A program made the position numbers and the translations under genes. The notes beneath the pieces were generated by a model. The model was not told the origin of the DNA. It made no database searches and worked only from the letters and a program-made list of their open reading frames with translations. From Bugula neritina (Eukaryota > Animalia > Bryozoa), in contig OZ037769.1 of assembly GCA_964035545.1 (NCBI GenBank), forward strand, positions 4,073,929-4,137,928: a stretch of DNA of 64,000 nt, written 5' to 3'. Positions 21,291 to 63,889 of the stretch are shown here, one piece after another; positions within the stretch are counted from its first letter, which is position 1; every line of letters starts with the position of its first letter.

Positions 21291-24200
21291 ATGCGTAAGT
21301 GTGAAAATTCCTAAAGTTTGTTTTATTTTTTGCATTTGTATATATAGGTATATAGAAGTACATATAGTATATAGTATACGTGTAGGTACATAGAAATAAT
21401 AGCTATAATTTCACACAGTATTTTTACTCAAAATTCAAAATTTATTATGAAAAATGCTTTTTTAAGTTGTCTATTAGATCTTTCAACTCTCCAGCTGCAT
21501 GGATGAACGGCTGGGTGAAAAGTGATACAATGTAATGTAACATATTATATCAAGTAGAACGCTATATCATGGCCGTAAAGTAGTATAAAACTCCCATATT
21601 TGACTTATTTTAGTGCTTGTAAAGATGGCCATTGCACTGTGTGCTGCAACTATTTTTGCTGGTAAGTCTACACATAGAATTCTTTTGCTATGTTAATTTA
21701 TTCAACATGATATTTAGAAAAACATTATAAATGCAAAGAAATTGAAACCTGTGCGTTTATGAATATTTTGTGCTTATACCAGAGTAGAGTAGAGTTTCAG
21801 TTATTTCAACTCGAAATTTTATAGCTTTACTGAAACCCATTGAAATAGCAAAAGATCTACTAGCTAATGGCTATGAAGAACTTTGTGCATGTCATAACTT
21901 CATTAATTTTTCTTTCACTCTATTAAAACTTTATTTTATTGGTTTCAATGTAGAATGCGTGTTGTGCTTTGAGTGTGAGTAATAGAAAAATAATATGTCA
22001 TTGATATATATGTTCAATTTTCCTTGTTTTAATTAGACAGGATTGCCTTCTTTTCTGGAAATAAATTTGTCTTAGAATTATCAAATTTGAAGTTAAATAA
22101 CGCTATCTCTTATAATGTAGATTAATTGCCCCCACAAACCTGAGGCTTTTAACTTGCAAGGCAGCGTCATACACTATGTGGGTGACTGAAGAATTACAAC
22201 ATAGCATTAGTTTGCAGCTAATGTAGTAGTTATGGTAGTGCACACTTTAAAAGTAGAACTGATTAGTTAGCAGGTCTTGCAAAAACTATAATTTACTTTT
22301 GGTAGAGTTTTCTGATGCTATGGACGCAGCAGTTCATCCCAGGATTCCAGGTTAGTTGGATCTGATATCAAATCATAAGAAACATGTTTAGTAATTTGTT
22401 TTTATAATTATAAATAAAAGCATGTGAATCGCCAACAAAGAGCACCAGTTTACTTTGTAGGTTGCTCTTCACTTACAGTTTTTAGATTTTTTCAAAGTAA
22501 ATCATGACCAATATAGTTTTCTATGAGCGACCCTTCCTGCCCAAGATAGAGAAATGTATCAGTTTTAGAGATTATGCAATAAGATACATAAACACTTACA
22601 AATATTTATCAAAATACAAATTTTTGCAATGCCATACTATTATCATAATATTCTAGTATATTACATTATACACATATTATCGTATTATAATATTGTTTTG
22701 CAGTTTGTGAAGAAAACTTGTTTAATGAGTTTTGCAAGTTTAGGCAACTAGTGAAGACCAGACACCCTGACAAATGCTTAAGGTTTGTTCTTCATATTTT
22801 TTTGCATGCAGAGCACAGTCATAGCAATTATAACAGCCATAGTCATTGTACTTGTCTAGTCATAGTCACAGTTATAGTCATAGTCATAGTCATAGCTCTA
22901 ACAGTTATAGTCACATTTATAGCCATTGAATTGTAGTCATAGCTTGGTCCTAGTCATCGCAATAGTCACAGTAATTGTTGTAGTCATAGCTTAGTCATAG
23001 TCATTGTAATAGTCAAAGTCATAGTCATTGTTGTACTAGTACTAGCTGTTAGCCAAAGGAATATAGTGGAAACCACACTAACTACATAACAGTAATAAAA
23101 AAAGATTAAAGCTTTAAATAAGAGCATTTTACACTAATTTATGATACATTTGTGTTTTTATTAGTTGGTAGTGATAATAAATGGTTTTATATTAAATAAT
23201 TTTCAAGAGCCAGGACTTTGCTACAAAAAGCAATATCTGACTGTGAGGTAAAAGACCCGGTGAAAAGGGTGTTTCAAGGCAGTCGATACGTCAAGCTGTT
23301 TTTGAGAAACTGTGGTGATATAGAGTTTCCGTCAGAAGGTGAATGAATAATAACAACTTTTTATGGCACTTTTACAGATTTTACAATTTCAACTACTCAA
23401 AAATTGGTGTAAGCTAGCATAAATAATTGAGTAACTCACTTTTTGTTATTCATTTCTCAAGATATAGATTATTTTCTGTTTACTTACAAAGACTTTGCAC
23501 AGTATAATTCAACACACTGTACCTTTTCAACTTTATTTTAGGTTGTGGTAAAATTACAGCATGCTTGCAGAAAATTTTCAAGTTAAATGGACGCAGAATA
23601 GATTGGTAAGAAATCTATCAAATACCATATCAAGTTATCAAAGTGATTATCAGCAAGATGCAAATCAAAAGCTGCAATTTAATCTGCAATATTCTTGAGT
23701 TTACCCAGTGGCACCTGTGGTGTAATGCTAGCTTGCCTGCTTGCAAGCCGGAGGTCTTGGGCTCGAATCCTAGTGGGGACAAAAGTTTTATATCTGCATG
23801 TGGATTAAAATAGAACCTAGGATTGAGATAAATCATTGGAACTTCTCTCAACTTTTCAACTACTTTTTAATTGTGCTTAAACCTACTCTTTATTATATAA
23901 TCCCTGGCTTATTGTGATTTAAATCCCACAGTATAATATGTCTACGTCTTAATTATTCAAAACTTCTTCAGTAATTGTGTTAATATATGAGGAGCATGTA
24001 ACTGTACTGCTTTTCTTCAAAACGCGTACGCTCCCTTAAATAATGAATGCCATACGTATAGGTAATATTTTGCAATTATACTCTTACAACAGTAGGTTTC
24101 TTTCGAAATTTTCTTCTTACAATAATTATGCAGTCAAACTGGTCTGCAATGTTTTGACAGCTAGTTGTTATTCCTTTAACCTGCTGTGCTCTATGCTAAG

Positions 24201-24728
24201 CCTGTTGTTAGCAGTTTGTGCAATAATAGCAGTTTTGAAATCACTGAAATGAATAATGAGAGTGGTGTTGTTTGGAATCCCGAAGCCCCTGTAGCGTGCC
24301 TGCTTGTAGGCCAGAAGTCTGTCGTTCAAATCCCGGTGGAGGCAATTATGTATTTCATAAGTTGTTATTCCAAAACTTTGACTAGTGCTATGCTAATATT
24401 TAAGAGAACCAAACCTGCTCTTAGACTTATTTTATTAAAGAACTGAACATGTAACTTGAATATTTTTTAAGTCCAATACCATGATTCAATGACTGTAAAT
24501 CACACTTTCTGTTCATAAATACATATCGTGCCAAATAATTTTACTAGTTCTAAAAAAGAAGAGGCTGAAAATTGCTACCACGAAGCTACAAAAGGAGAGT
24601 GTGTGTTAGCAAAAGGAGCACAGAAATTGGTAATTCATCAAACTGTTCCACGAGTCTGTCCATCTGGTCGATACAATTCAGTGAAACCCCTCCTTCCCTC
24701 ATGTAGACGCCATAGTCGTGTTCACTAA
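21291..24728 (+). CDS. Secreted 12-cysteine protein, paralogue A (183 aa); exons 21291-21294, 21614-21661, 22306-22350, 22704-22782, 23208-23338, 23542-23605, 24548-24728
   Basis: Spliced product: MLLVKMAIALCAATIFAEFSDAMDAAVHPRIPVCEENLFNEFCKFRQLVKTRHPDKCLRARTLLQKAISDCEVKDPVKRVFQGSRYVKLFLRNCGDIEFPSEGCGKITACLQKIFKLNGRRIDCSKKEEAENCYHEATKGECVLAKGAQKLVIHQTVPRVCPSGRYNSVKPLLPSCRRHSRVH*. It has a signal-peptide-like N-terminus, and its exon phases and Cys spacing match the three paralogues. Confidence 0.85.
22815..23032. repeat. Degenerate (AGTCAT)n hexanucleotide repeat
   Basis: Many tagtca/catagt units in intron 4 of gene A. Confidence 0.8.
23698..23794 (+). mobile_element. tRNA-derived SINE head, family 1
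   Basis: A-box-like TGGTGTAATG, CTTGCAA loop and B-box-like GGCTCGAATCC; related copies at 24284-24350, 27070-27174 (-) and 32325-32420. Confidence 0.7.
24284..24350 (+). mobile_element. tRNA-derived SINE fragment, family 1
   Basis: tagcgtgcctgcttgtaggccagaagtctgtcgttcaaatcccggtggaggcaa matches the 23698 copy. Confidence 0.55.
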
Positions 24729-26553
24729 TACTACTCTCATTTTAATAGATATGTTACCAGTTTGCGAAGGTGTAAAATGTTTTGAAATATTATATATAAG
24801 CAGTTGCTGTAACCAACTTTATTTACCCACATGGCATAAATTTTTTGTGGCTATTTAAGAACATTTGTCGTACCAAAATTTATTAATAAGATAGTAATCA
24901 TGCAGTAACAATAGAATAGTTTGCAGTATTATATTGTTCTCATTCCCATTAAATATAAATAAATCTAAAATATTGTGTAAACTTCAAGCAGCATAGCAAC
25001 ATTTGCTTCCATTTTCTAATTTAAATCGTTTTTAAAACTTTGTTAAAAATGAGCTTTGCACAATGCATTTTCAAATACAGAGCTTATAGATATGTTCTAA
25101 GGTTATCAAGCTATAGTTACAATACTTATTTTGCTTAAAAAATTGACCCGAAGTTTTATATAAAACATATTCACAGTTTAATCAGCCATTGTCACTTGGC
25201 TGTAACATATCACAAAAACGTTATGTAAACATAATTATCCAAACCATCTGGCTTGTATAAATATTTATTACTACACCTTTGCATAATAATTGCAATAAAT
25301 TAAAAGTTTTTATATAGTATCAGATGGTAAAATATATATTTATGCTTATAATTATGTTTATACGTAAACAACTCTCACAGTTCCATGAGAAATAAAATAG
25401 AAAACTGTTGTATTATGAAGCTAAGCACTTGAAATTTTCTTTACCTGTTGATTAGCAGAGATTGGTAATTCATGAAACTGTACTGCAAGCCCGTTTGTCT
25501 GGGGGCTATGGCAGTTCAAAAAGACCTGTTGCTCATTTAACTTAGTGGTGAATAACTTCCTATTTCAAACATTTTCAGTGTATGACATAGTGATAAATGT
25601 ATTATCAATATAAACAGTATCTTATTCATATAAAATTGATGATTGCTTAAAATACAATTCTTTCACTCTTTATTACAAAAATTTAAAACACTATGCTTTA
25701 TAGCTATAGATGTTTTGTATTACTTACCAAAGTAGCATTAAAGCTTTTTTAAATTATGCTATTTAATCTGTTTTAAACTAAAATCATAATCTAGTTTAAT
25801 GTATAAGCTGTTAAGAGCCACAATCAGTAATCAGGGCGTAGTTAGTAAGCCCATCTTAATACCCTTAATCTATGCTTCATTTTATCTTTATAAAATTAAA
25901 AAGGCTATTATTGCAAGCTTATATTGCTATACTTATCAAAACTATATCTGATTCAAAGGACTCAAGAGTCATAAAATAACCATTATTATCTGTTAATGGG
26001 TAAGCAGACATCATTTGTATAATCCTTAGCAAAAACATTGTAATTGTCACTGTGGTGTATACCTAGATCATAAAATCAAAGATTATTACTGGAAAAATCT
26101 TAGTGTAAAATTATTAATCTTAGCTCTAAGATACTATCAAACATGAAGAGTGAGGGTTTACTTCACTAAACCCAAGTTATTTACTACAATATAATATGTT
26201 TGCTTCGCCATACATGCAGTTGATCATTTCAAGCCTTTACTTGACTATTATTTATCGTTAGTCTAACTTCAACAGCTACATAAAAAATTTTATTAAAAAA
26301 TTGTTAGCAATTTGAAAAAAGTTGAGTATCTTGATATACAGTGCATGTTTAAGTTGTTATGTTTTTTTATTTCAGCCATAAAATAAAATAATTATAAACA
26401 ATACTTAATAAAGGTTAGAAATAATGAAAACAGAATGTTTTGAATGGGCGTATACATTAATTCATATTCAAAGTGAACACATGTTGACATAAATATATTT
26501 TTGTCTACCTCTATTGATGGAGATATTCAAACTTAAATTCATGAGAGTAAAAA

Positions 26554-29226
26554 TTATTTTTTACATCTTTTAGGAAGGAAGGGCCTTTGTGTGATTCGGC
26601 CACCAGGACATCCTCTATCTATAGCGTTCCTCATCGTAACCTGGATTCCTATTGAGAGATCGCACCCTGCTTTTTGTGTTTTCTTCAAACAATTGTTCAC
26701 CCTCCTCTTTGTTCTGGAACCACTATAGCGAACACCGATCATAAATTAAAATAAACTGTTCAATCTTTTCTATGTACTATAAACAAAAAAAGTTTATACA
26801 GTTATAAAGTTTTTGCGCCCTCTAAAATTCGAACCACATTCCTAGCATACTAATTAATTGAGGTCACTGAGTGCTCTCAACACTATACATGCCCTAGCTC
26901 TTTAGAATTCTACAGGCCTCTCTACTACCCTTTTAGTTTTTAGGCTTCCCTAGCCTCTCAAATCTGTCTGGGTATACTACTACTACTGCTGCTGCTACTA
27001 CTACTGCTGCTACTGCTGCTACTGCTATTGCTTCTACTACTACTATTACTACACTTCACCAAAGGCCAAGATATTTGATAAAACCTTTGCCTCCACTTGG
27101 GTTCGAGCCCGAGGCCTCTAGCTTGTAAGCAGGCAGGCTACTATTACACCACATTATAGGCCACTGGGTTAACTTAACATTACAACAGTCTAAAAAATAC
27201 TTACCATTTTAACCTGATGCTTGTTGGAGTTCGCACGAAGGCTTCAAATATGCAGGTCGGCACGCCATTGCATCCTAGACAAAACAAAATTCTGTCCGGT
27301 TAAACGGCTGAATTAAAACTAAATCAACAGCTACTGATTTAAAAAAACGTTGCGAAATTTAAACTAAAGTTATTTTCTTCTTGAGCAATTTTACTAGATT
27401 TTATATGTATATATGTTGTTACCACATATTTTAGAAAAAGAATTAAAATTGGCACAAAAAGTTTTTAATGTATTTTCTGTGGCAGTATAGTTTAATAAGT
27501 GTGAAAAAGCCAATAGTGAAGGAGACAACTTCCAAGAGAAGTGGTAATTTGATATATTGCTTACTTGGCCTGTTTGCAATAAAGTTGATTTGACGCGGGC
27601 AGTTTCTATCAAAGATCGTGTATACTCTGAAAGCTTGAAATGCCCATTTAACAGGATCAAAGACGGTACATTTTGTATTTGCAAGTCTGTTGAATTTTCT
27701 TGCTCTAAAAATTTATATATAAATTATACACACATAATGGAATAATCGATTTAATAAGTTCATTTTAGGGTTTTACCCTCAAAATCAAATGTTTTCAATT
27801 CGCCTCAATTATAATTTATAACCCCTATTTAAATAATCAATAAACTTAAAAATGGTCGAGTAGCTAAAAAAAACTAGAAAAAAAATTGCGTTGCTTTATA
27901 CCATGATGCATAATACCAACTCTTGAAGATACCTCAGAACAAGGCTTGACTAAGTTTTTAGTTAAAAGTTTATTTTTCTAGATGAAAGCAGTTTGAAAAT
28001 TACCTCTGACAGGATGCTAGTGTTCCTATCTCGGCATATTTCTCAAATTTGCAAAAATTGTCTTCCACTGACTTAGTGCAATCTGAAATTATAGACGAAT
28101 AAGATAAAGCATACAACTGATCACATTACAAGCCAAATAGCTTTAATAGAGGTTGGTTTTTAGCTGAATATGCAACTATATAATCATCACTTTACTAGTC
28201 TAAATACTTTAACAACAAGCTAGTCTACGAAAAAGTTTTTAAAATAAAATAGTCTCTATAAATAATAATTGATTTTTAAAAAGTTACTGGTGCAGTGTGG
28301 AGTTATTATAGCTTATTTCTTGTATTAAATTTTTAAATATTTGAACTGGTGAAATTTTATACAAATATACAATCTTACCAAAGTATAATGCAGGTTTGTT
28401 GAATCATTTATTCATGTTACATGTTGTTTAATATAATATTTAGCATAATTGACAAAGAAAAACTTTGTTGTCTCCTTAAAGAGAAATTAATAAGCAAAAG
28501 TTAATTGAAGATAAACTTATAAGATTTTATAAAAATTGCAAAGGCTTACCTTCGCCTGGAGGTATAGCCTGAGTGGTTGTGGTAGATGTAGAAGAAGAAG
28601 ACGAAGTTGAACTGGTAGGAAGCGCTGGCAGCACTGGCAGCCCCGGAAACACAAACTGAGATCTTGAAAGTCCTACAATAAATATACTTATAAATGGGAT
28701 ATTTATATAGTGACTTATTTTTATTCTCTTTTTGTTTAATGCAGCAACTTCTTATTTTAGTGTAAAAAACTTGATTGCAAGCAAACCTGTTAAGCATTAA
28801 ACTACAGGACTACTGCAGAATTAAAGTCTTGACATTACAGTTGGGTTGAATATTTTTTGCAAATAATCCACTTACCTAGTAAGGAACAGACAACCAAGAC
28901 AGCCAGGACTTTTTGGTGTGCCACTGAAAGATACAAAAGTATGCTAAGTAAAATTTTAGCTTCTCAACTTTGTTGCTTTTTATTAAAATTTAAACATTTT
29001 TCTTCTTTGCTTTACAAACATTTAAACTTTACAAACGCAAAACCAATGCTTCATATTGCACTTTTCAAATTGCAAATTAAATAAGCAAAAATTAATATTT
29101 AAAATACAAAATACCAAATATATTAGTCCATAGTGTAAACAATGCACATCCTATTGCTTTCTGGTAGATTTAATGATCATATTATTAAAACACAATCTGG
29201 TTAAATATCACTTTTTAAAACTTACT
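26554..29226 (-). CDS. Secreted 12-cysteine protein, paralogue B (209 aa, Pro/Ser/Thr-rich linker, strongly cationic); exons 29226 (A of ATG), 28876-28923, 28550-28672, 28004-28082, 27565-27704, 27205-27274, 26554-26722
   Basis: Spliced product: MAHQKVLAVLVVCSLLGLSRSQFVFPGLPVLPALPTSSTSSSSSTSTTTTQAIPPGEDCTKSVEDNFCKFEKYAEIGTLASCQRARKFNRLANTKCTVFDPVKWAFQAFRVYTIFDRNCPRQINFIANRPRCNGVPTCIFEAFVRTPTSIRLKCGSRTKRRVNNCLKKTQKAGCDLSIGIQVTMRNAIDRGCPGGRITQRPFLPKRCKK*. A TATA-like ATATAAAA lies on - at ~29300-29307. Confidence 0.83.
26975..27052. repeat. (CTA/CTG)n trinucleotide repeat
   Basis: tactactactactgctgctgctact... run. Confidence 0.85.
27070..27174 (-). mobile_element. tRNA-derived SINE head, family 1
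   Basis: The reverse complement, agttaacccagtggcctataatgtggtgtaatagtagcctgcctgcttacaagctagaggcctcgggctcgaacccaagtggaggcaaaggttttat, aligns along the whole 23698 copy. Confidence 0.7.
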
Positions 29227-32200
29227 CTTGGTGGCAGATAATCCTGTTATTTTGGCAGCTGAGTGATAAGAACTGAATGTTAGGGAGGAGTCACGTCTGT
29301 TTTATATTCCAACATTGAATACGTATAAATCAGTCTTAAAGGGGGGCTGATTATCTGCAATCTGTTTTAATGTTCTTCTTCAAAAGTAATCTGTGTGCTT
29401 TACGATGCTATTGGTGGAGTTATTTAACGGTGTATCTAGTTTGAATTTTTATACCTAATCTTAGCTTCCAACCTATACTACATTAAATTAGTCTATAGTA
29501 CAAGGATGGTTGGCTTAATAGTCTCTTAGATTGCTGATAATTTTGTTTTGTGTGAACTCAGTCTAATAATAATTAGATTACTTGCTCATCAACTTACTTT
29601 TCTCATATTTTCAAAAGCAGATGTTAATTAGAAACATTAGTTATACAGTATTTTTTTAAAAAGAAAGTAATTTACTGATGAAGCTTTATTGCACTGCATA
29701 TAGTATACTTATGCAATTTTATAGTCGCAATCTCGGTGAGAAACCCCTGATGAAAAAGGTTTTTGTTATAGTATAACATAAAACATTTTTAAGTTGATTC
29801 AAATAAAATAGTCCTAGTTATATGCAGTTATAACATCTTCAGAAAGTTTAGTTTTTATTGTTTTTGGCTAAATTATTCACTTGATGCATGTGCTAAAACT
29901 CATAAAAACAACATGCAAAACAAAAACATATTATCATCACTATACAGCTGTTAAAACTACTCACAACAAAATAAACATGAAAACTGTTGAGAAGTCAAAT
30001 CATAGGTACTTATGCATGGTAGCATAGTTGAGAGTATTTTTATTTTAACAAATGAAACAAATGATTTAACTTTTAGTTGGCGATAACTCTGATTTCCTTT
30101 ATTAAAAAATGCTTTACCTAATAATTGTAAGACACATATTCTATCCTCGAACACTACTGCATAAGGTCCAGATGAAATTTAACATACATATATTGGTACT
30201 TTCAAAATGTGAAAAAATATTTGACAAGCATTATTCTAGGTGTTATCTGAAAAGATCATAAAACTGTTTAGATATTTCTTTTGGAATATTCTATTTTATA
30301 CTCATGTTACTCAAAGTGAAGGTTTAGGACTTTCGAAATTTGAACATCATATTATTTTTTATTTTTGAGTTGTAGAATATAATCTGCATTTTTGCAGGTT
30401 AGAAGAGATTTTCTGCTCATGAACGATTTGTTTAAATTGAGTTGTTTTTGTTAATTGTAAGAGCATTAATTTTTTGATTCAAAGTTTTCCCTGCTAACCA
30501 AAATGAATAGCTGAATTCTTTTGTAATAAGCGATTGGCTAATACACTTATAATACGTTGGAGTCAATTGTTACAGGGAGACATTTGACAAACAGCTAGTA
30601 CTAAAGCTGTTGCTATTGAGTTCAGTAATCACACAAAAGAATAAGTAATAAAATTATACCAAGCATAAAAGCTTAAGAAATCTTAACAGACGATGATTCA
30701 ATTATCAAGATAAAAAACAGCTGAAGTATATGACGTGTAATGCATTTTGACCAGCTTTTGACAAACAATTCAACAATTAGAAAAACAATGAACAGACGTC
30801 TAAAAATATTAAGGAGTTGATTATACTTTTTCAATTTTGAACAGCAGTTCTACAAATAAAAAAATTATAGACTATGTGCCCACAGCCAATATCTCGAATT
30901 AAGTACAAGGCTATATAAGCAAATTAAAATATCCATAGTGAACTGTGCAATATAGAATGGGATAGTTGGGTACTTCATAGAGTAAACAAAAAAATAATTT
31001 ATGACGCTGGTGAACAAAATTAATATCCCGCACAGAACTTTTAAATCCAAAGCTCTAATCTTGTATAAGAATAGGCATCTCCTGTCTAGCTAAGGGGTGT
31101 TTAGCACTAACTAACTAATCAATCAAGCGTGCAGATAAAACTCTTATTCTACTCAAGTTTCATAATCTACAGCTTGAAGCCTGTCAAGGATTAGGTTTCA
31201 GACTAAATTTATAGCAAATATAATCTGTTTAAGTTTCCCATTAATGTACATTAATCCGTCTTGTGACCGCATATATATGTATGTATTGCCATCTCCATAC
31301 TCATGGAAGGTACATGTACAATGCACATGCTAGCACGGAAATCATATTCAATGGCTAGATAATTAAAAATAAATTCCATGTGAAATCTTGTTTGAGTATA
31401 GACACATATGAAATTCTCATGCTAAGAAGTTGGCTTATGTTCACTGCTATTATACCAGCCCACATGTAAATCTTATCACAGGAAATTATTAAGATAATCC
31501 TAATGTGAATATTTGGGGCCGAGCTGCTTGTGTAACAAAAGCGGCAAAGAAGGTGTGGCCATCTGTGAAGCATTTGTAACAGTCTATTAATTATGTAACT
31601 ACAGTACACTATTTTATGATTTCACAATTTTACAATACTATAACAATTTGCTATAATATAAGGATTTAGCACTTACTTTTATTTTATTTTTTAACTCTGC
31701 TTTCAAGAAATAGTAAATTATTCTGTAAGTCGGAAAGACCAGTTTAATTGTTACTTATATGCTTCTTTTCCTATAACTACTACCATGCTACACACTGCTA
31801 ACCGCATAAAATATTCTTCATGGTAAATTATAGATTCAATTATGTAACAAATACTGGGCTAATTAAAATTATATGTTTGCCAATAAAATTAGTTTTCACA
31901 GTTTTGGCTACTTATAGATCTTAAGTTTTCAGAATAAAATTGATACCTATCTGGTTATAGCGCTGCCGATGTCAGAATATAAACCGATACCAATTCTTAT
32001 GCTGTGACTGTGAGACATATTAGCCGCTCTCTCCCCATGCTTTGCACTTACTGTGAAGCTAATCAAACTTGTATTGTTGACAGCCATTAGTTGGTTTACA
32101 TACCATAATTTTGCAACGAGTTTAAGTTATAAGTAGGTAAAAGTGAAAATTAAACTCGATTTCGTAAATCTAAAACTCTTTTATGTAAACCATCTAGAGA

Positions 32201-32324
32201 AAAAAAAACAGAAAATTGACTCATCCAAATATAGGCAACTCCAAATTATTAACAAACAAAACTAAGCTACTCCTTGCTGCTATATATGTTATTTAATTGG
32301 TATTAATCTGATTAGTGTAGTGGT

Positions 32325-32420
32325 GAGTTTACCCACGGCGGTCCCCTTGGTGAAATGGCTAGCACACTTGCTTGCAAGCCAGAGGTCTGAGGTTCGAATC
32401 TCAGTGGGGGTAATTATTTT
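32325..32420 (+). mobile_element. tRNA-derived SINE head, family 1 (best-preserved Pol III boxes)
   Basis: TGGTGAAATGG (A box) ... CTTGCAA ... GGTTCGAATC (B box); the cloverleaf stems are imperfect. Confidence 0.7.
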
Positions 32421-36345: not shown

Positions 36346-39300
36346 TTAGATTTCCCGCAATCTAAATTTCCTGATTTTTTCAATGTGATAAGGGTAGCTG
36401 TCTTGCAGGTCTTGAAAGGCTTGACTTAGAATGACGGCTTGGTAATGAGGCTCTGTTCTTTCTGTCAGCGGAATATCAATCTTGCTGACGTACATTCCAA
36501 CCGGCTGTAGCCTCTCCTCACCTGATCCTGTTTTAACCTGGAGGTGAACGATCCTTCCACAGTCTCCATCTTCTAGCAAACTAGAGCGAATAAAAGTTGT
36601 AGTGATTGCAAAATCTTACACTAATCAAATCTAAAACAAAAGCAACTTAAAAAGAGTGTGTATAAAAGTATTTTTTATAAAAGAGACAAGGTGCCGAAGT
36701 TTAACCGTAATAGCAGCAAGAAGTAATGCTTAACGAAAAAAAGTATCGGCATGCAATTTGAATTTTATAATTTTTAAATTTCACAAATTGAGTTATAAAA
36801 AAACAGCACAATTTATGTAGTCAGTGTTATTTTCTAGTAACAATTATTGCAATGTATAGTGAAAACTCCAAATAAATATATAAGTTATGACAATGTAGTG
36901 CAATAACAAAAGCTGCTCACTCGTTTCCTTCATCTGTTTCTGAAGTGATGATGAAACTGAGGTGTTTTCCATCTTTCACTCTTTCTCTCCCAGATGGTCT
37001 GTGGGCCACTTTTAGCATACCACTCAAGCTTTTATATTTGTTCCGAATAACAACGGGATGGCCAACTTTATAGAGCTCTTCTAGATGGTTCAGTGACTTA
37101 ATTTTGTAAATATTTTCACCCGCACTGTCTTGGACGGTTGCCAAGAGCATCTGCAGCCGTTCAGCATCACTATACTCAATCGGTAGCAAAGCGATATCGT
37201 TCAGGAACATGTGGTGGCACGTACCATCTTGCAGTTGAGGACACAACCCTGCTGGGCATTTGATATCCTCTGATTGGGGCTGAAAGTATTTTTGCCTACA
37301 ACCAACGAGCAGTGGCAGCTTTATATCTGCAGGAATAAGTGTTCCCAGCTCATCTTGCGTTTGTTCAGGTACGCTCCTATGAGTCTTTTCTGAAACCTTG
37401 AGAAAGTATTCATTTTTGCTGCTACTAGCCATGATCTCTTCACGAATTCTTGATATTCTAGCTTCAGGCTCAATTTTCTTTTCCTCATCTCGTCTATCTC
37501 CATTCGCCTCATTGCTGCTGCCATAGTGGTCACACTGGATGCTGGCAACTGGTTCTGCTTGAATTTCTCGATCTGGCTCAATGTGTACAATATTGTTGTT
37601 CCATCGCCAAGTGTCGTCAGCCTGTTTAGCTCTTTTAAACTGGTTTGATGATAAAATCAAATGAGCGGGTACCACTGCAAAAATAACTCCATGCTCATGA
37701 GGGTTTTCTTGATTTCTTACAACCCTTGATGATACAAGAAGCTCACAAGTTGCTTGTCTTTCAACTTTCCACTCACATGAGTTTTTTTTCGGCACTTTGA
37801 CATAGATTTTGAGACTTTGGTCGACCTGCTTTATAGGGCCATCTGTATTCTGGGTACAAAAATTGAAGTGGGAGAACTCAGGATGAGTCTCCTCTAGCTC
37901 CTTTTTCAGCAGGTTTAACTGAGACTGGAAAGAGCTAGCATTAGGTCCTAAAACTAGGATATCTCTCCAATTATCAGACGCTTGAGTTATGATGGCTGAG
38001 GGGTCCAAATCCAGGCAAACACTAAAGGTGAATCATACACCATGTAAAAGCAAATAATGGCTTATGCTATCCAATCATACTACTATTTTTTATAGGTTGC
38101 TTTATGCAGATATAAAAAGTCAAATTTTAAAGCACAGTTTAAAACATCAAACTTGAATTTTATTCTATTTGAGTAATAGTGTCAAGTTTTTTTACAGGGT
38201 TGCTTTGATTTAATTGTTTGTAGAGCTTAAATTTTTTTAAACTGAGTTCAGAACCAGCCATTAGATATAAATCGTTACCATAGCTACTAATTGAGTTAAA
38301 ATTTTGTTACACTGTGCACATTTTGTTGCCTTAAACGTTACTAGTTTAAAATTTCTTAATACTTTTAGCAATTATTTATTACAACCAGAACATAAAAGCA
38401 ACTGTTTATTTAATATTCGTTTTAGGAGTTGCTTTTTCTCTACATATTTTGCTTTGTAAATGGATTTTATTTGAATTTTGATTTCCTGTAAATATTTGTG
38501 ATATCAATTATATTGGCGTTAAATTTATTTAAATCTAAAGCAACTGATTTACTGTTAGATTTGCAAACATTCGCGGACACAGTATAAATAGTAAGCGCAG
38601 CACTACCTGTCAATTTTTTCAAGCAGTACTTGAGGAAGTCCTGTGCATGCGTTTGAGGAGTTATCTTCTTTTGTAAAAGTCGCATAATCTCCTGATTCAC
38701 TATCTTTATCGCTGCTATCGCTGTAGTAAGGAAGAAAATGTTTCTTTTTTTCTGGAACATTCGTCTGATGCTCTTTTTCTTCTTTTGCTATAAAATAAGA
38801 ACCCAAAAGATATTAAATGCATATATTATATTGCTCTTCGTTGCAAATAATAAAAAAATAAAAAGCTAAATATTCATCCTATAGATAAATGAAAGCATAG
38901 CCTATACTAGGACTGTCCAACAGAAGGCCTTAGGGTCAGATGTATTTCCCAGCCTAGGTTTATGTGGCTCTCAAAGGCATAACATTACTTTCGATACATA
39001 GATTGTAACTGGTTGTATGTTGCCCATTATAAATAACTATTGACCCCATTAACTTCATATTTATGTTTAGGTGACATACGTCAGCAGGCATGACTCGTTT
39101 ACCTTGTGCTGACTATTAGATTTGTGGTCAGGTCATTGTGGTCGTGGTGGCTGTCATTCTTGCCCTACATCTGCCGGGCTGGGTTGGTATCCTGAGGCTA
39201 CCCAGTGAATGTTTACTATGTTTTGAGACACAATCATTGTGGTATTTTTTTAGGGACAATAGTTGTTTATGCAATTTGTTTTTGCCTGGTACAGTAACAA

Positions 39301-44871: not shown

Positions 44872-45248
44872 TTAGTTACAGGTTTGTAGTCCTAGAGATA
44901 TAATATAAGGGCAAAGGGATTTCAAAGCTTCATCAACCACGTATCTCTGAATAGACTCTGCAATAGAACATCCTTGTCTTTTTGCCTCATCATAGCACGT
45001 GTTTACTATGCTTACCCGACTACTGCAATAAGAATAAATCAAGTGTAAGACGTTTTGGTCAAAAATCTCTACAAAATGTAATATTATACATCTATATACA
45101 CAATTTTTTTATTCAATTGTATAGTATCATCGTAATGCCAGCAATACAAGTGCTAGTTTTAAAACAGTTTTATATATATATAAAATATAGAAATAATAAA
45201 ACCATAGCTTTTGCTTTAGACCAAAAATAGTTGGCAGCTTTAAATTTG

Positions 45249-45340
<92 letters not shown>

Positions 45341-48300
45341 TTAATTGCTATCAAATAATATATTGATCATCATACCAATGATAAAATCCTTCAAAGTTGT
45401 CTTCCCTTACACAACAATATTGCAAAATGATGTATTTTTATACATACACATAGTTATACAAGTTAAACTTACCAGTCAATAACAACATTATTTTCAGGAG
45501 AAATGGATGCAAGGGAGTTCACACAGTCTTTTAGTTTACTGCAACCTAAAAATGAAAAGCAGCTAAATTTCACCAAAATTTAGCAAAATACTGCATTGAT
45601 AAATTCTGAGTTTAGAAAAAGTGTTTCAAGAATTCAATTTCTAAAAAAAGTTGTCTCTCAACATTTCTAATAGTCATGCCAATTATATTGATCACATTGT
45701 ATGTACAAGTAATTTTAGTCATCTACACTGCTAGTTATATATGCAACTTTATAGTCATATGTTATATAAGGATTAACACGCTTTGAAGTATATTCTATAC
45801 TGGTCACCTTTTACAGCCGGGGTAATGCCCCGGTAGCAAAACCCGCACTTAAGTTTATAGTCGACATCCCTGCGAGAAAATTTCCCTGGAGAGAGTTTTG
45901 ATAAAAGTGGGCGAAAAATTTATTTAAATAAGGCACAGGAGCAATTATGACTAGATGCTCTTCCTAACATCACCAATGGCTTTTGTTCGAGCTTGAACCC
46001 ATGACCTGGAGTTTACTTATAGGCAAACTCTCTAACCCCTAGGGCCTAGATATATTACTACTGATAAATATAAGCTGTATTAATTAGTTTATACACAGCA
46101 AATCCAATAGTATTCAATAAATACAATAGCAAGCTACTATTTGTTTGTTTACATTTTAAATCAATATTATAGCTATATATTATTATGATCACAATAATTA
46201 TAAGTTTTGCTTTCAGAAGCTGTCAATAAATAAATACATCACGGATTACAAAATTGATGTAATTCTTCATAGATTATCATGTTACCCAACATTTAACAAA
46301 ACTATGGCAATATAGAACGGGCTGATTATTGCAATTACATTATAAAGCTATCATTATATGTTATCAAAACTATAAAATTTCATTATGTGGATGCTATAAT
46401 GAATACATGGAGGGAGAGGGGGGTGCCTTGCGTAACTGAACAACTATAGTTAGTAAGCATAGGTTACCTGAACATCAATGGTTACAACTAAATTATAATT
46501 TATATAATAGAGGATACATAATGTCACATTTGTAAAAATCTCTAGCTTTAATTGGTGCCAGCTTATATATATCATTTATAGTTATACTTAAAATTCCTAA
46601 CTTGTTATATTATCTCTAAAACTATCTTATTATACCTGTTGACTATAATGCAAAACAATATAAGCTGCAAAGGCGCATAACAGTAAAATATATTGTAAAT
46701 TTTCTTTAAAAATTTAAATTTTATGTTAATATGATCATTTTTATCAAGAATATAAGTTTCTTTTGAAGTTTCAAAATATTGTCTTTTATAAAGTAGTGAA
46801 AATTGCATTTAGCATGTGTCAAGAATCAATTTCCGTTTCATGATATTATGGTAAATTATTTGTCAACAAGTTTTGTAGTCGAGAAAGATTTATTACAGCA
46901 TTTTTACTGTTTAAAGCTCTTAATTTTTTGCTATGCTCATAATATAATAATGCAGCTATAATTATTTTTTATAAAATTTAAAACTTATATGACATGAGTG
47001 TTTTTATAAAGTTATTATTTTTTATCATAATTATAATATAATGTATATTTTAGAATACTCAAGATAATATTATATATAAAACATTTAATTTTATATTGTT
47101 ATATTATATTTATATTATAGTATCTTATATTATATTATTATGTTACATTATCATATACAATTATATTATGCTTTATATTACTCAATATATATCAAAATGT
47201 CTCCCAATAAGCTCCTATCTATATAAGTAATCTGCTCACTTTTTCATCCAATTTTAGATATTTGTGAAACAGACTATAGATCATATAGAATATATTATTT
47301 TATCTCTACTTCATGCGTCGAATCTAGCAACGAATGTACTCAAAATTATGTGATATATCATAATATTATTTTTAATATCAATTTGCAAGAGTTGTCTTCT
47401 TTAACATAAATTTAAAACTAAAATAATATTTTTTTTATAAAAACTGAACTTTAATATGATTTATGAAATAGTATGCATGAGTGTGCACACTTATGATTGC
47501 ACACACATGATTATCTTGTTGTGCTAAAAACTTATAGACTGAGAACTTACCATCTGTGGGGTAAGATATGTTGAATTGTCCGCAGTTCTTATGGAAAGTG
47601 AAGAAAGTTTTAATGCCTTGAGCTAACCTGGTGACTGGGTTTTTTATCTCACAGGTTGCCATCAAACCCATCATTAACGCCCTAGCACTATATAACATTT
47701 ATGCAGCAGTAAAAGTAATATAGTAATAGTAACAGTATAGCAGCTAGTAACAATATATACAGTAACAGCATATTATATAGTAGTAACTAATATAGTTTAT
47801 TCCAGCATTGATTTGTCAGAGCTGAAGTAACTTAAAAGCTTTTGCTCTGTTATATGATAAATATAGGTACAGTAGTTTCCACATAGTAATAATATAGGTT
47901 TCTATTTGAATTGCAATATTTATGAATAATTTTATATATTTCACACATATTCAATAGAAGAGTTACGTAACTTGTCTTTCAATATCACCTATAAACAAGC
48001 TTGTTTACTAATTGTAAAGCTTTTTAATTTTGATACCCAACAGATGAACTGCTATTACAAACTTTCTTTTTTTTTGAGTTTGGTTAATGTGGGTTGTACT
48101 AACAGTTGAAGTTATTTCATTTTTATCAGCTATTAAGACAAACTGGTTGTGTAAAAGAAAGTTATAATAGTAATTTATACATACTTTAGACAGCTTTCAT
48201 TGGTCTGTCGCTCTACCATTTCTGAAAAGCTACAGAAAATCTCTGATATCTTATCTTCGCAAACTAAAAAGTAAAGTCATATGCACTAATTCAGTATTGT

Positions 48301-49622
48301 GAAGATATAACAACTTCATAGAATCTTAGTTATCTGCATGCTACAATTAATAGAGATGTTGAGTAATTTACAAATTTTTATATCAAAAAGTGCAGAATTT
48401 TGTCATCTGTGAAATTTGCTGCCAAAATGTATTTATTAATTTGTTTAAAAATTAAAATAATTTATGAACTTGAGCAATTCAATTTAATAAAACATATTTG
48501 TTATAAATACAAATCAATTATTATATTAATATATATGTATGTTAAAGTAATGCTATGTTAATTTAATACAATAAGCAAAGACTTCATATTAGTTGATGTT
48601 TTAATGTTTATATGTACCTGGTAGGCTAATTTCTACACACTGCATGCCTGAAACAAAATATTAAAAATAGTTTAATATATTTGTTGAAATTTTTACATTA
48701 TATTATTATAATATATCGACAAAATGCAATAAATATGGAAAAGCAATATAAATAAAACCAAAAAATTGGAAATAAATTCATATATTTGCACAACAACTAC
48801 TATAACATAAAACACAACAAAGCATGAAAAAACCAACTTTTGGATTTAAACGCAGTGTCTCGCAGTATTATAAGTTAATTAGCTAATTTTTAAATTTAGA
48901 TCTAAATTCACACGACTCAGACACTTTCGATTTTTATCAAGTCAAGACAGAAAAATATATTGTATCACGATGAAGTAAAATGTGGCTATAAAATAGTGTA
49001 TAACATGTAATCATAAAAGATCCTTGTTAGCCAATCAACTCGTAAACTTACCTGCAAATAACATGGCAAGCCAGACAAATATTGCCAAGTTAGTCTTTCC
49101 AAACACTAAAATAAAGGTTAAATGTCACGTAGTATAAATTTAATAAACTTTTAATAAATGCTGGATATGGAAATTTATAAACACAATTCTTTTGCTCATA
49201 TCATATAGGTAACAACATATTAACTAACTAAAAGTTAACCGTATATACTGCGTGTATTATAATGTTAAATTACCTAAATTTGTATACAATCATTAAACTC
49301 GAAACAGATAGGCCTACATTAGTTACTACATTCCAAATAATAATAATTTTGACAAAATATGGAAGGCATGCAGATATTTAATAAATTAAAACACTACCAG
49401 TATATTAGACGACATTAAAATACTTTGACTTAAATGAAGAAGAATTTTCCGAGTTGAAACAACATGAAGCATTTACCTAAACGTATATAATGCAAAGTAA
49501 AACCAAAAAGCTTAAATTTTCACAGTATCAAAGATATAAACTAACCATAACTATATAAGACTATATATGTATGTGCAAGATCCTATGATAGACTATTAGT
49601 AAACTTTCATATACTTACACAT
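44872..49622 (-). CDS. Secreted 12-cysteine protein, paralogue C (175 aa); exons 49619-49622, 49052-49105, 48618-48647, 48185-48263, 47551-47687, 45473-45545, 44872-45022
   Basis: Spliced product: MLFGKTNLAIFVWLAMLFAGMQCVEISLPVCEDKISEIFCSFSEMVERQTNESCLNARALMMGLMATCEIKNPVTRLAQGIKTFFTFHKNCGQFNISYPTDGCSKLKDCVNSLASISPENNVVIDCSRVSIVNTCYDEAKRQGCSIAESIQRYVVDEALKSLCPYIISLGLQTCN*. Confidence 0.87.
45253..45338. repeat. (TA)n microsatellite in the last intron of gene C
   Basis: Pure TA run. Confidence 0.97.
45850..46050 (-). mobile_element. tRNA-derived SINE, family 2
   Basis: Shares cacaggagcaattatgact.gatgctcttcctaacatcaccaatg and gaacccatgac with the 43047 copy. Tail fragments also appear at ~19043-19097 and ~29715-29765. 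Confidence 0.72.
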
Positions 49623-49707
49623 TTTGAAGAATCAAGTAATTGACCAAAAATATAAGGGAACAATACACTTTTACTTGACGATATGGTAGCTTGAAAAAAG
49701 TAACACT

Positions 49708-49775
49708 TCTTTTTATAACACCTTTAATAGCGAATTGACCAATCATATTAGTTCGCCTACAATCATGAGCCAATA
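49708..49775 (-). promoter_or_regulatory. Core promoter of gene C (GATTGGTCA + TATA)
   Basis: On the minus strand: GATTGGTCA (49736-49744), then TATAAAAA (~49710-49717), about 90 bp upstream of the ATG. Confidence 0.55.
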
Positions 49776-53002: not shown

Positions 53003-53197
53003 TTTGTGTGTGCGTATATATATGCATGTGTATAATATATGCATGTGTATATATGCATGTGTATAATATATGCATGTGTATATATGCATGTGTATATTAT
53101 ATGCATGTATATATATGCATGTGTATATATGCATGCATATATTATATGCGTGTGTATTTGCTCGTGTGCGTGCGTGCGTGCATGCGTGTGCGTGCGC

Positions 53198-53255
<58 letters not shown>
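53003..53255. repeat. Compound satellite: (ATATATGCATGTGT)n, (GTGC)n, (GC)n, (GT)n
   Basis: Directly visible; generates five spurious ORFs in the track. Confidence 0.95.
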
Positions 53256-53259
<4 letters not shown>

Positions 53260-54874: not shown

Positions 54875-57759
54875 TTAGCAAGTAGGCAGTCCTGGATTTA
54901 TTTCTGGGCAGAGAGAACTCAATGCTTGCTGGACTACCAGATGTTGTGCAGCAGCTGCTAGAGGGCATCCTTGGCTCTTGGCCTCATCGTAACAATGGCT
55001 AACTTCTACTCTTCTACTGCTGTTAAAGAGAATAACAAAATACAAATTAGTTCAATATTTACTATGGTAAGTAAACAAGTATATTTATGGGAATGAAGCA
55101 AACAATCTTGCAACTGTTTTTTAGTTCAGCACAATTGCTATATTTTATCAATACATGAAAATAAGTTTATTTGGTAGTGCATGTAATCATAATAGGAGTT
55201 AGGCTGAGTTGTCAAGTTCTATGTAAGATAAACTTACCAGTTGATCATGATAAAGTTATCCTTTTTGGTGACAAGTTGCTGAGCGCACTCTGAGAGTTTA
55301 CCACATTCTACAGAGAGAAACAAACCATGAATAACAATAGCTGTGAAACTCAAAGATGCTGTTGCTATAAAAGATGACAAACGAACTTACAGGCAAATAA
55401 TTTCTTATTAAGGCAGACTGCGCATGCTATACTTTTTGTAGGCTTTTATCGATATTATTTCTACAGAATTTTCAACTGCTGCTTGTGTTTTTATATCAGC
55501 TCAGATTTTAAAATTTAAATATGTAAAAAAACGAAATACTAAAATTTTATGAAACTATTCAATCTACCAATTCTTGTAACAGTTGAAAAGAATGTTTTTG
55601 CGCTCCTTTTAAATTTCAGCAAATTTAGGCAATTATACTCACTAAAATAAGCATATATAAAAATCTATTTAATTTAGAGATTACAATTCAAACAAAACAA
55701 ACATACAAACAAGTAAACAAACTTACTGTCCATAGGGTAGGATATGTTGAATTTTCCACAGAACTGTTCAAACAACAGAGCAGCTTCCAGGGCCTGGGCT
55801 ACTCTCTTGACTGGTTCCTTCACTTCACAGTTTGCAATGGATCCCAGCATCAATGTGCGAGCACTACAGTATATTGCAATTGTAGAATTACATATAACTA
55901 TTTATATTTCTTATATGATTTATACGTATATAACTATTAGTATTATCTATATTTTACATATATAAATATTCATATTGCCTATATAACTATTTATGCTACA
56001 TATATATAACTATTTATAACTATCATAGTTATATGTAATTATTTATATAACTTATATAAGCATTTATAGCACATATATAGTCATATTTATGTTATCTTTA
56101 TTACCTAACTATTCACAACATAAAGTAGATTACAATAAAATTATATAACTATTTATGTTACCTGTATCACATGACCTTATACAAAGCTCTATTCTAACCA
56201 AACTTAGCATTATAAATGCAAAGTACTTTGAAATATTATATATAAAACCTATAGTACAAATCAATATGCTATTACTATCTAAATATAATTTTTGATTGCA
56301 ATCATATAAAATTACCATATATAACTCTTTATCTTAACTAGCTATATTATCAGATATCTCTACAAACCCTGCTGACCTTTACAGCACAATATATACACAT
56401 TATGTAACATGTACTGTCTGCTCACTTACCTAAGGCAGCTTTCACTTGTACGTTTCTCTATCAGTTCGCTAAATTTGCAAAAGTTTCCTGCGACTTTCAT
56501 TTCACACACTACAACATAAGATATACTTTTTATATTATGCAAACAGTTATTACTTTATTTATTTCAATATAAAAATCACTTATCAACATAAACAGATTGC
56601 TAATAGGATAGATTTGCTTTGTGAATTCTCACCATATTTGACAATTAGTAGTCATTTCATTTATGTTGTACATACGGATATTTGTTATTCTTTTTTATAA
56701 ATACATTTTAAATAAAATAGAAGTATTAGAAGTAAGTAAATATTATGCTGAACAGCTATATAAGCAAAGTCAATAGAATTGGTTTTGAGAACAGATCTTT
56801 AATAAATTTGTTTTGCCAACACATAAAACAAGCAAAATATAGATTAGGTAAAAAGCTTTCATTCAAGCTCATATGCAAATTACAATAATATGTTTCAAAA
56901 ATTGATTTTAATATTCTGTTAGTATTTGTGTACATTCTAAAACATATTAAGTTGTAGATAGTAGATAATAGAGCACTCGTATTTTCAACTCATAGTAAAA
57001 CTTACCCTCTGGTTTGGCTGTTGTAGCAGATTGTGCTCCTGAAACAAAACAAAATACTTGTTGTAAACAAAGATGAATTGAAAAAATATTAGCAAATGCA
57101 ATTATCAATACTATATGTTGTACGGATTATAGCTATAATGAAAATACACCAACTATGAGTTAATTAGTTAATTCATACAATGTTTATATTTTAGTGACAG
57201 TTTGAGCTATAGATCTCATGTATAGGTAAATAACTAACTGAATTCAAAAAAATTAAAACTCAATTTTGCAAAGAAAATATAATTAAATATGACGGAACAA
57301 ATTTTTAATCAAAATAGTCTTATACATGAAGCTATAAGTAAGATTTACTATATAATATTTAGCTAGAAATTTGATACTGCATCAAATATACTAGACAAAC
57401 AATTTTGTATGGATAAAAACTGGAAAATCTCTGAACTCACCTAAAAGCAGCGTAGCAACACATACACAGATGGATAGGGTGTTCTGTACAGACACTACAA
57501 TATGATATACATGATATGCAATTCTATAAGAAAACTTCTATAAAATAGTTGCTCGTAATAAATATGTATATATATAGCTGAAATTTTGTGTAAACAAATA
57601 GAAAAAAATGTTACTACAGTTTAAAGATTAAAATCTCTTAAAGCTTCAATATTTCAATAATAAAAATATAAGTAATATATCAAAATTATCCAAAAGTATA
57701 CATAATATAAAAATAAAGAATAACTATTAAAGGTGCTTCAGAACTTTATACTTACACAT
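54875..57759 (-). CDS. Secreted 12-cysteine protein, paralogue D (173 aa); exons 57756-57759, 57441-57494, 57006-57038, 56430-56508, 55727-55863, 55238-55307, 54875-55019
   Basis: Spliced product: MLSVQNTLSICMCVATLLLGAQSATTAKPEVCEMKVAGNFCKFSELIEKRTSESCLSARTLMLGSIANCEVKEPVKRVAQALEAALLFEQFCGKFNISYPMDKCGKLSECAQQLVTKKDNFIMINCSRRVEVSHCYDEAKSQGCPLAAAAQHLVVQQALSSLCPEINPGLPTC*. None of these exons appears in the ORF track in the coding frame. Confidence 0.87.
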
Positions 57760-57865
57760 TTTGAAGATGAAAGTAATAAGGTAAGTAGAAGTAGATAGTA
57801 TATATGATACTACAATATTTGTATCTCTCACTGATATGGTTTGATCAAGTCATTAAAAGTTACCA

Positions 57866-57902
57866 GCTTTTATAGTTTATGCAGCTGAATATTGACCAAT
57901 CG
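57866..57902 (-). promoter_or_regulatory. Core promoter of gene D (GATTGGTCA + TATA)
   Basis: On the minus strand: GATTGGTCA (57893-57901), then TATAAAAG (~57867-57874); same spacing as gene C. Confidence 0.55.
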
Positions 57903-58439
57903 AATTCGTACACATATTGTTACCCTTATAATATTTATATTACACAGCAACGTGCAAAAGCCTACATGTAGTGTGTTGTAGCCATAATTGAACAGCATGT
58001 TTACGAATGGGCATATAAACTAAATAATTACATAGCTTTACCTTTTGTTTTTCTGTAAGATGCAAAACCACAGTTACATGTAATTTACCACACGTTCTCA
58101 AAGACATTGAAAATTATTGTAGTTGAGTTTCACTCAATCTGATTCTTGTGTATAATTTACCATTGAACTTGACTATACAATTGTATGCAAGTGTCATGTA
58201 AAAAAGGTGATTTGAATATCTTTTATGTATTTAAAAGAAACCTCATGCAGCTGTGATTTCTAGACACATCCTAATTGATAATTAATATGCCACATAAACT
58301 ATTTTGTAAAGCTATAAACGTCTTCATTGTTTTTAATATTATAGTATCTGAACATGAATATTTAAGAATTGTTATATATACAAGAAATCTGAGTGTTTTT
58401 GTGCGTATAAATTACAAAACTACCACACACATTGACACA

Positions 58440-58560
<121 letters not shown>

Positions 58561-61500: not shown

Positions 61501-63885
61501 TATAGCACAAAACCATGTGTTTGTATAGCCGTTAATTCATACTAGAACAAAAACCAAAATCATATTGCTAATTAGCACAAAATGTATGAGTAGGTAATTC
61601 AATTGAAAAAAATAAAAATGCTTATAAACTATATAACAGCTGCATGCTCTCTGTTGTAATGGATTGTCTATAACACCACTTTTATGGTGGAATACGTATA
61701 ATTTTCATTATACATTTGTAAAAATATACGCATGTGAAATATCGGCATAGAATTTTATAAATTTTTTAATGATGCAATACTTTGCATATATATTATTTAT
61801 AAATATATTCATCAGGTTTTTGGTGTTGAGACTAGAATAATTAACTATAACTGGCATATTGGATACATCTAAGAAAACAGCCAACTCTGTGTATAAATTG
61901 GATAATCAAGCCAGAAAAGTTTTTATTCTAAAGAATTTAGTATAATTCAAAGCTTTATGCATGGCTTACTTTAACATATTCAGAAATTAAGGAATTATAA
62001 AAAATTATTTTCACTTTTCTTTGACAGCTGATAAGGAAGTGCATACGTAGCATTGTTTGACTTTGATATATGATGCCACACAAATCTAATGCATAAGGCT
62101 TGACTAAATCAAAATATGTAAAACTATGCGACTAATGCCAATGTTTGTTTTGTGCTAAAAACCGATTAATTTAAAGCATTTGTTGGCAATATAGCTGCTA
62201 AGCTGCAAAAATTAGTAGTAGAAAAAGCTATGCTGTTAAAATAAAAGCTGTTTCCATTAATAATTAGTAAATATGTAGAATGCCTATTATAGATTTAAAG
62301 GACTTACATAAATAACAGCTATACATGTGTATTAGATTATGTATGACACATGTTCTAAATAACAATATGTATTTAGCTTACATTTGGTGCACTTTGGAAG
62401 TGTGACTACTAAAAACAACATTAGGATTTATAGATTTGTATGAATAAAGCATGGGGCAAGGATATTGAGTTGTAGCATATAGACTTAGAGTTTTAACTAT
62501 GACAATAAATTAATTTATAATATAACTGAAAAGTTGAAATTTTCATCTGCAGTTATACTGATGTACTTAAATTTCAAAACTTATTTTCTCTCTAAGTGAT
62601 TATTTACACTGCATGAAAGTGGTATTTAACGATTGCTATAACCTAGATATACAAAAAAATTAGTGGTATTTCTAAATAGATGGTGTACCGTAGGTTCAAA
62701 TTTTACGTCTTGTTGAAGTTCTTTCTTAGAAAGTTATAAAATTGACCTGTGCTTGCCTTTAATAAAAACTGTTGATTGCTATCTTTGAAAGAAAAAAAAA
62801 TGCAAAAGACAGTTTATGAAATAAGTTGAATATTAGTATAGTTTAGTGAAATATTGTCTGTTTGAGCTTCAAATCAAAGAGTGATAATATTAGAGCAAGA
62901 GAAAAACCTACTTAAAAAGATCACAGTTTTGCCTTTTATCATAGAGCTTAAATAAGTTTGAAATTTGAATTAACACTTGAAATTCAACCAGTTTTATTTG
63001 GCACAAAATTACGTTATGCCATAAATATAGTTCCCATTTCTCAAAAATATTACTATCATAAATCACTTCACACCATAAAGGTTTTTGCTATCAAAGCCAT
63101 GTCTAGCTAATGTATATATAATGGCTAAAAATAGTTTATCTTTATTTGATAGAAATGGAAGTCTAGTGCTTTCAAATGTCTGGTTAGGGTAATAAAGACC
63201 TTGAAGCTTAAACAGGAAGCAGAAATATCTATTTATAGCCTATTTAATTTTTAGGTTGCTTTATACATTTATTACGTACATAAATATAAAATATTATAAC
63301 TTCTGTTTATTCACCCTTTAATCAACCTAGAAAATTGGTAATAAAAATGCTGCAAAAAATTAGTCATTTAATAAAATTCCTTATACTATACTCAAAAAAA
63401 CTTATATTATATATATAGAAGCATTCAAGTGTTAAGAAAGTTATTGTAAATAATAATATTAGTATTGCCTTTAATAAGCTACATTAATGCTACATTAACA
63501 AATAAATGCAGTTTTAAGTATTCATATCAATCTATTTGTTCATGTGCCTCAGGAATGTTCCCTCAACTATACTAATTTGATTTGTGGGATATTCGTGCAT
63601 ACCATACGGCTAATGAGTCAGCAGAAACTTTGCTGTTGAATTAATATGCACCACGTTTGATACATCAAATAGAAATGTGGAAGGCTATTAATCACGATGG
63701 AAGCATAACCTCAGCTATTTATAAATTTTTTATTATAGCAATGCCACCTAAGAATATATCTAGTAATGCTATTGGCTAATACACTTTACTAGATATTAAA
63801 TATAAGCACTGTAGCTTCGACCTCGCTACCATTTTAAGTATAGAAGTGTTAAATATAGCTCAATAAAACCATAGTCTACTTGAAA

Positions 63886-63889
63886 ATGT
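63886..63889 (+). CDS. Probable first coding micro-exon (ATG T|gtaag) of a fifth 12-Cys paralogue continuing beyond the window
   Basis: ttgAAAATGT|GTAAGT matches the ttcAAAATGT|GTAAGT of genes C and D. It is preceded by ATTGGCT (63771) and a TATA-like TAAATATAAG (~63797) at similar distances. Confidence 0.45.

Follow-up and report, generated by a model that had tools for sequence, protein, structure and literature searches.

What is encoded by a group of intron-rich genes for small cysteine-rich proteins in the bryozoan Bugula neritina, and is the family related to anything known? The window analysed here, the whole stretch of 64,000 nucleotides (nt), is part of contig OZ037769.1, abbreviated C5 below, and corresponds to C5 4073929-4137928; coordinates without a prefix are positions in the window. 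B. neritina is used as a model of fouling and harbours a symbiont that produces bryostatins; most of its secreted proteome has yet to be described. Lineage-restricted tandem arrays of small secreted cysteine-rich proteins are common in invertebrates. It was found that the window carries four complete genes (A-D) and the start of a fifth (E), which belong to a family that is almost certainly real and secreted.

Gene structure and cysteine pattern

The initial annotation of this DNA had claimed four complete genes with seven coding exons each, a common series of intron phases, an exon 4 of 79 nt and a first coding piece of 1-4 nt. All of these features were reproduced when genes A-D were rebuilt from the sequence. 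Every intron is of the GT-AG type, the phases are 1,1,1,2,1,2, the first coding pieces of A, B, C and D are 4, 1, 4 and 4 nt in length, and splicing gives open frames of 183, 209, 175 and 173 amino acids (aa), respectively. The likely fifth gene is also real and complete, with its remaining exons beyond the window.

21291-24728 (+): gene A, 183 aa; exons 21291-21294, 21614-21661, 22306-22350, 22704-22782, 23208-23338, 23542-23605, 24548-24728
26554-29226 (-): gene B, 209 aa; exons 29226, 28923-28876, 28672-28550, 28082-28004, 27704-27565, 27274-27205, 26722-26554
44872-49622 (-): gene C, 175 aa; exons 49622-49619, 49105-49052, 48647-48618, 48263-48185, 47687-47551, 45545-45473, 45022-44872
54875-57759 (-): gene D, 173 aa; exons 57759-57756, 57494-57441, 57038-57006, 56508-56430, 55863-55727, 55307-55238, 55019-54875
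63886-63889 (+): gene E, first coding piece; the other six exons (2-7) at C5 4138340-4140743

Gene A has an alternative in-frame ATG 12 nt upstream (21279), and intron 1 of gene B splits the start codon after its A at 29226. Exons 4-7 measure 79, 131-140, 64-73 and 145-187 nt across the family, with phases 1,2,1,2. A search for RNA support over 21200-29400 gave one run only, and this looks like genomic DNA (continuous cover and no junctions); it is a weak negative because the query is long and mostly intron.

The claimed twelve-cysteine spacing, together with the conserved FC.F, AR, PV and Q, is present in all four spliced proteins. The spacings between successive cysteines of the mature proteins are as follows.

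Gene A: 8,13,13,22,9,5,13,8,8,18,14
Gene B: 8,13,13,22,12,5,15,10,8,17,14
Gene C: 8,13,13,22,11,5,16,8,8,18,10
Gene D: 8,13,13,22,11,5,15,8,8,18,9

The four short motifs are invariant across A-D, while pairwise identity among the four proteins is 23-51%. Is such a pattern expected by chance? I built a profile from three of the genes and ranked the left-out gene among 3641 open pieces. The left-out gene came first in 12 of 12 trials for exons 4, 5 and 7, with E-values from 6.5e-6 to 2e-16 for exon 5; thus, the family is no chance pattern. Exon 6 alone was not recovered by the leave-one-out profiles because it is too short and divergent. Two distal members (C5 4320766-4326192) have a thirteenth cysteine beside Cys 8, and dimers are conceivable for them.

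Extent of the array and its annotation

How far does the family extend beyond the window? An exon profile search of the genome revealed about 23 loci in mixed orientation between C5 4.095 and 4.344 Mb, and the window is thus the edge of an array of about 250 kb. Eighteen of the loci have an uninterrupted frame across exons 4-7; their splice sites are canonical, and exon 4 again measures 79 nt. Four others are broken or partial: an early frameshift in exon 5 disrupts one, the exon 5 donor is missing from another, and the remaining two are incomplete.

C5 4222744-4223842: member without the exon 5 donor
C5 4268050-4269216: member with the exon 5 frameshift
C5 4233306-4233637: partial member; exons 6-7 not found
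C5 4217728: lone divergent exon 5

A dispersed member with exons 4-7 lies at C5 10.33 Mb, 6 Mb from the array; this site and the part of the array beyond C5 4.337 Mb were seen as 3-kb loci only. A weak second exon 7 match at C5 10319846 (region 10319846-10334298) may mark another copy. The median identity between paralogues is 38% (range 23-90%), and the tree separates gene A, gene B, a C/D group, an E group and a distal group.

The published B. neritina assembly comprises 216.00 Mb in 320 scaffolds plus the mitochondrion (PMC11480708). A second assembly, GCA_010799875.2, carries orthologues with the same splice sites. Since its introns are only about 80-86% identical to those of the present genome, it probably represents a sibling lineage of the same species complex. 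The gene A orthologue is 92.6% identical over exons and 85.9% over introns; the gene A protein is 93% identical to its orthologue (P0003/P0012), and the gene B protein is 87% identical to its own. Record P0012 spans the short first junction of gene A. The orthologue of gene D exon 5 is P0002, while that of gene C exon 5, P0004, is present in Bugula metagenomes.

The initial annotation had expected automated annotation to miss the family, which was not the case: 13 NCBI protein records from the sibling assembly are family members, named hypothetical proteins. Thus, the family has been annotated and never described. A literature search found no published description of it, and so far it is undescribed and known from Bugula alone.

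Selection and surface charge

Did the paralogues diversify under positive selection? The ratio of nonsynonymous to synonymous divergence (dN/dS) between orthologues of the two assemblies is 0.14-0.26, and the family-wide omega is 0.27. The codon models were run with an in-house script on 23 sequences and 136 codons of exons 4-7, with branch lengths scaled from M0; exon 3 was left out, and saturation affects the deep branches. Over these exons, the M1a/M2a and M7/M8 likelihood ratios were about zero, M8 gave no gain over M8a, and no site class had an omega above 1. The diversification by positive selection that had been suspected was therefore not found. Within the limits set by saturated deep branches and the excluded exon 3, the paralogues have diverged through age and birth-and-death turnover while purifying selection acted on them, not through an arms race.

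The most constrained positions other than cysteines are E3, F10, A28, R29, V45, R47, F58, N61, I65 and the tail prolines, none of which suggests a catalytic set. No His, Ser, Asp or free Cys is invariant across the family alignment. The core net charge varies from -5 to +23 among members. Genes A and B and members g14-g19 lie between +13 and +23 with isoelectric points (pI) of 9.2-10.3, B being the extreme at +23; C, D, g10 and g11 are neutral or acidic, the core of C being acidic.

The strongly basic members raise the question of whether at least these proteins (A, B and the distal subfamily) act directly on membranes as antimicrobial or antifouling effectors. Their charge and pI, as well as gene birth and death with broken copies, would suit such effectors. 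But no site class is under positive selection, the neutral and acidic members do not share the charge, and a saposin-like fold was not matched. This role is therefore doubtful.

Predicted fold

Exon 2 is hydrophobic and signal-peptide-like in nearly all members. AlphaFold was run twice, with different members, on an alignment of database proteins plus exon pieces. Both models have six helices (about residues 2-18, 22-36, 44-61, 73-82, 92-107 and 111-128) followed by an extended, proline-containing tail, with predicted local distance difference test (pLDDT) values of 92 and 88 and predicted template modelling (pTM) scores of 0.85 and 0.80. Together with the array of about 23 loci, the hydrophobic exon 2 and the six-helix models bear out the proposal that the proteins are secreted, mostly helical and rich in cysteines, and that the family grew by tandem expansion. 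A test for a repeat, in which the two halves of three helices each would be copies of one another, detected none, as 19 of 60 shuffles scored as high.

Does the predicted fold resemble a solved structure? Foldseek found no match in PDB or BFVD at an E-value of 0.001. The wide fold search of 48,161 chains reached no more than Z 6.8, for a match of 64 residues, and Z 5.7; both are at the background level of helical bundles. The best template modelling (TM) score of a shape search in the ESM Atlas, which finds about two thirds of the best matches, was 0.46. In agreement with the initial annotation, no saposin, odorant-binding protein (OBP), defensin or knottin fold was among the listed matches of the fold searches, and nor was stanniocalcin. 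The predicted fold seems to be without a solved match; the blank searches do not prove that it is new. A large family under purifying selection, with a confidently predicted fold for which no solved counterpart was found here, makes a clean target for structural work.

Insect OBPs, including the plus-C types, resemble the Bugula family in having about six helices, a signal peptide and tandem arrays, and some have 12 cysteines. No OBP, saposin or lipid-transfer profile matched, and none of these structures was among the best 50 of either wide fold search. May the proteins nevertheless carry small hydrophobic molecules, be they lipids, chemical cues or products of the symbiont such as bryostatins, in an OBP-like or lipid-transfer-like manner? 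The size of the proteins, their six helices and many cysteines, the tandem expansion of the genes and the purifying selection on them are in line with carrier families in general, and the number of hydrophobic columns in helices 1 and 3 exceeds what a single buried face would require. On the other hand, these helices may simply form the core, and the absence of known carrier structures among the best fold matches argues against the idea. Carriage is possible but rather unlikely.

Might the proteins instead be building or adhesive material of the cuticle, larval glue, mucus or skeleton matrix? They are predicted to be secreted and rich in disulfides, acidic and basic members could co-assemble, and gene B has a Ser/Thr-rich linker, encoded by exon 3. 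But the models describe a compact globular fold, and the proteins have neither repeats nor low-complexity bodies, so that a structural role is improbable.

Homologue searches and the DUF19 question

Are there homologues outside Bugula? The exon 5 profile was searched against 1.84 billion representatives, and three word-based searches were added; only Bugula was found. The reach of these searches was limited, and annotated bryozoans are few. Every genuine protein match is from B. neritina. A Vicia repeat protein (P0006), a low-complexity sequence (P0007) and a bacterial sequence (P0027) were artefact matches. A metagenome scan gave no match. Sequence searches of Pfam, NCBIfam and PDB were blank apart from a weak match of 48 residues (E 0.02) to Group III secreted phospholipase A2 of the bee venom type. 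This match does not cover the catalytic region, a check for the catalytic His-Asp motif and calcium loop was negative, no His is conserved in the family alignment, and there is no fold match; it was treated as chance.

Stanniocalcin (PF03298) is likewise secreted and helical, is 150-300 aa in length and is identified by its cysteine pattern at low identity (PMC5654410). It differs in having ten core cysteines, as defined by that pattern (PMC5654410), instead of twelve. No stanniocalcin profile matched, and stanniocalcin was absent from the Foldseek results and from the best 50 wide-search matches. Small secreted helical disulfide proteins often signal, as stanniocalcin and the ciliate pheromones do. 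Might the Bugula proteins be paracrine or hormonal signals, pheromones or gamete cues that act via receptors and coordinate zooids or larvae? One-to-one orthologues are kept across two lineages with about 20% silent divergence, which would suit a signal. But the stanniocalcin profile and fold searches were blank, more than 20 paralogues would be unusual for a hormone, and the positive selection typical of many gamete proteins was not found. Signalling is thus not a likely function.

DUF19 was among the helical families that the initial annotation had named for comparison. DUF19 proteins have twelve conserved cysteines and helical character. In Caenorhabditis elegans there are 51 DUF19 genes, 42 of them with a signal peptide, whose products are 140-220 aa in length, and 14 are infection-induced (PMC3534327). 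Nematode DUF19 genes are clustered and stress-induced, and they inhibit growth on overexpression (PMC8410859). DUF19, or T20D4.11-like (PF01579), thus resembles the Bugula family as a clustered multigene family of secreted proteins of 140-220 aa (PMC3534327, PMC8410859). In language-model searches, DUF19 with CPG4 (PF15481) and DUF1397 (PF07165) was nearest by features in both searches, and DUF19/CPG4 clusters came at the top with scores of 0.88 (184 shared features) and 0.85 (171). The size, secretion and twelve cysteines of the Bugula family are those of DUF19. The C-terminal cysteine rhythm of DUF19 may also resemble the C-x8-C-x8-C-x18-C found here.

Several results weigh against this kinship. 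The language-model scores are below the lead threshold of 0.9 and count as leads only. The Pfam DUF19 profile gave no match to 11 full- or near-full-length members at E-values up to 10, no member reached its gathering cut-off of 23.2 bits, and the same profile found nothing at the cluster in the genome scan. The CPG4 profile did not match any member even at E 10. The Atlas structure search, with its best TM of 0.46, did not return DUF19, and the known DUF19 clusters are nearly all from nematodes. UniRef names one member 'DUF19 domain-containing', and since the Pfam profile does not support this label, the family is not filed under DUF19 here. Thus, of the DUF19 comparison, the profile and Atlas parts gave nothing, and what stands, the only recurring lead to a known family, comes from the language-model scores and the one UniRef label. 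Taken together, a remote kinship with DUF19/CPG4 seems about as probable as its absence. If it is true, a nematode-centred family of unknown function would extend to a lophotrochozoan.

Alternatively, the proteins might have a new fold of six helices and six disulfides that arose in bugulid bryozoans and has no relation to DUF19, and might serve as a diversified set of binders between host and symbiont, for example by carrying or buffering bryostatins made by the symbiont or by managing the microbiome. I consider this alternative very improbable.

First exon and promoters

The initial annotation spoke of micro-exon genes. Schistosome micro-exon genes (MEGs) have runs of very short symmetric exons, which are skipped combinatorially. 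The Bugula genes share with them secreted products and many exons, but the core exons are 64-190 nt in length, their phases are asymmetric, and the short first piece probably closes an exon that also holds a 5' untranslated region (UTR). In 9 of the 11 genes tested, a TATA-type box precedes the ATG by 62-106 nt, compared with 13% in random windows, and an ATTGG box often lies about 29 nt before it. Because of this position of the TATA-type box, exon 1 is most likely an ordinary exon in which some tens of bases of 5' UTR precede a start codon close to the 3' end. The remaining coding exons are 30-190 nt. The micro-exon label was therefore dropped, and the schistosome-type class was rejected, as the coding region is not mostly made of very short symmetric exons. 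The putative promoter elements of three genes in the window are as follows.

21185-21191 (+): gene A, candidate TATA-type box; the ATG follows 106 nt downstream
29300-29306 (-): gene B, candidate TATA-type box, 80 nt upstream of the start
49711-49717 (-): gene C, candidate TATA-type box; an ATTGG (CCAAT) box lies another 26 nt upstream

Proposed role

What might the proteins do? Since no His, Ser, Asp or free Cys is invariant, action by binding and not by catalysis is suggested, and the subfamilies may be tuned to different partners. I tentatively propose, with somewhat less than even confidence, that they are condition-induced, non-enzymatic extracellular modulators (acting on stress, microbes or growth) that form a redundant battery and behave like DUF19 proteins. 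The comparison is made because the nematode DUF19 genes are clustered, their products are secreted and of the same size, and they are partly induced by infection or stress and inhibit growth on overexpression. On the other hand, DUF19 itself is not known to have a molecular mechanism. Judging from the promoter motifs, transcription would start from TATA/CCAAT promoters. The seven coding exons would then be spliced, as the sequence and its conservation indicate. The product may be exported by means of the exon 2 signal peptide, with cleavage within the variable exon 3, and it is confidently predicted to fold into a compact six-helix domain, in which up to six disulfides may pair. Outside the cell, a subfamily-specific surface, acidic or strongly basic, could bind the partner.

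Neighbouring features

The second half of gene A exon 7 has a degenerate copy downstream of the gene, which is also kept in the sibling assembly (L044:8895) and is either a relic or an alternative last exon. Copies of a SINE-like (short interspersed nuclear element), tRNA-like short repeat occur in introns; they have high depth in the genomic run, and ARAGORN calls no tRNA in them. The other features of the window and one within the array are listed together with these.

25457-25545 (+): partial copy of gene A exon 7 (second half), degenerate, without cysteines, with an AG in front
23727-23789, 24290-24352, 32358-32420 and about 27080-27170: copies of the SINE-like repeat
677-3065 (+): short-chain dehydrogenase exons (PF00106, E 3.7e-8), with a motif like that of very-long-chain 3-oxoacyl-CoA reductase
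8735-9307 (-): 191-codon Ser/Thr/Pro-rich open frame with no Pfam match, possibly a mucin-like exon
15515-15865 (+): pancreatic-type lipase exon (PF00151, E 3.5e-8), the upstream neighbour of the array
36920-38032 (-): open frame of 371 codons that lies between genes B and C and has no Pfam match
C5 4174850 (+), within the array: 452-codon reverse-transcriptase-like open frame, of the LINE (long interspersed nuclear element) type by its motif

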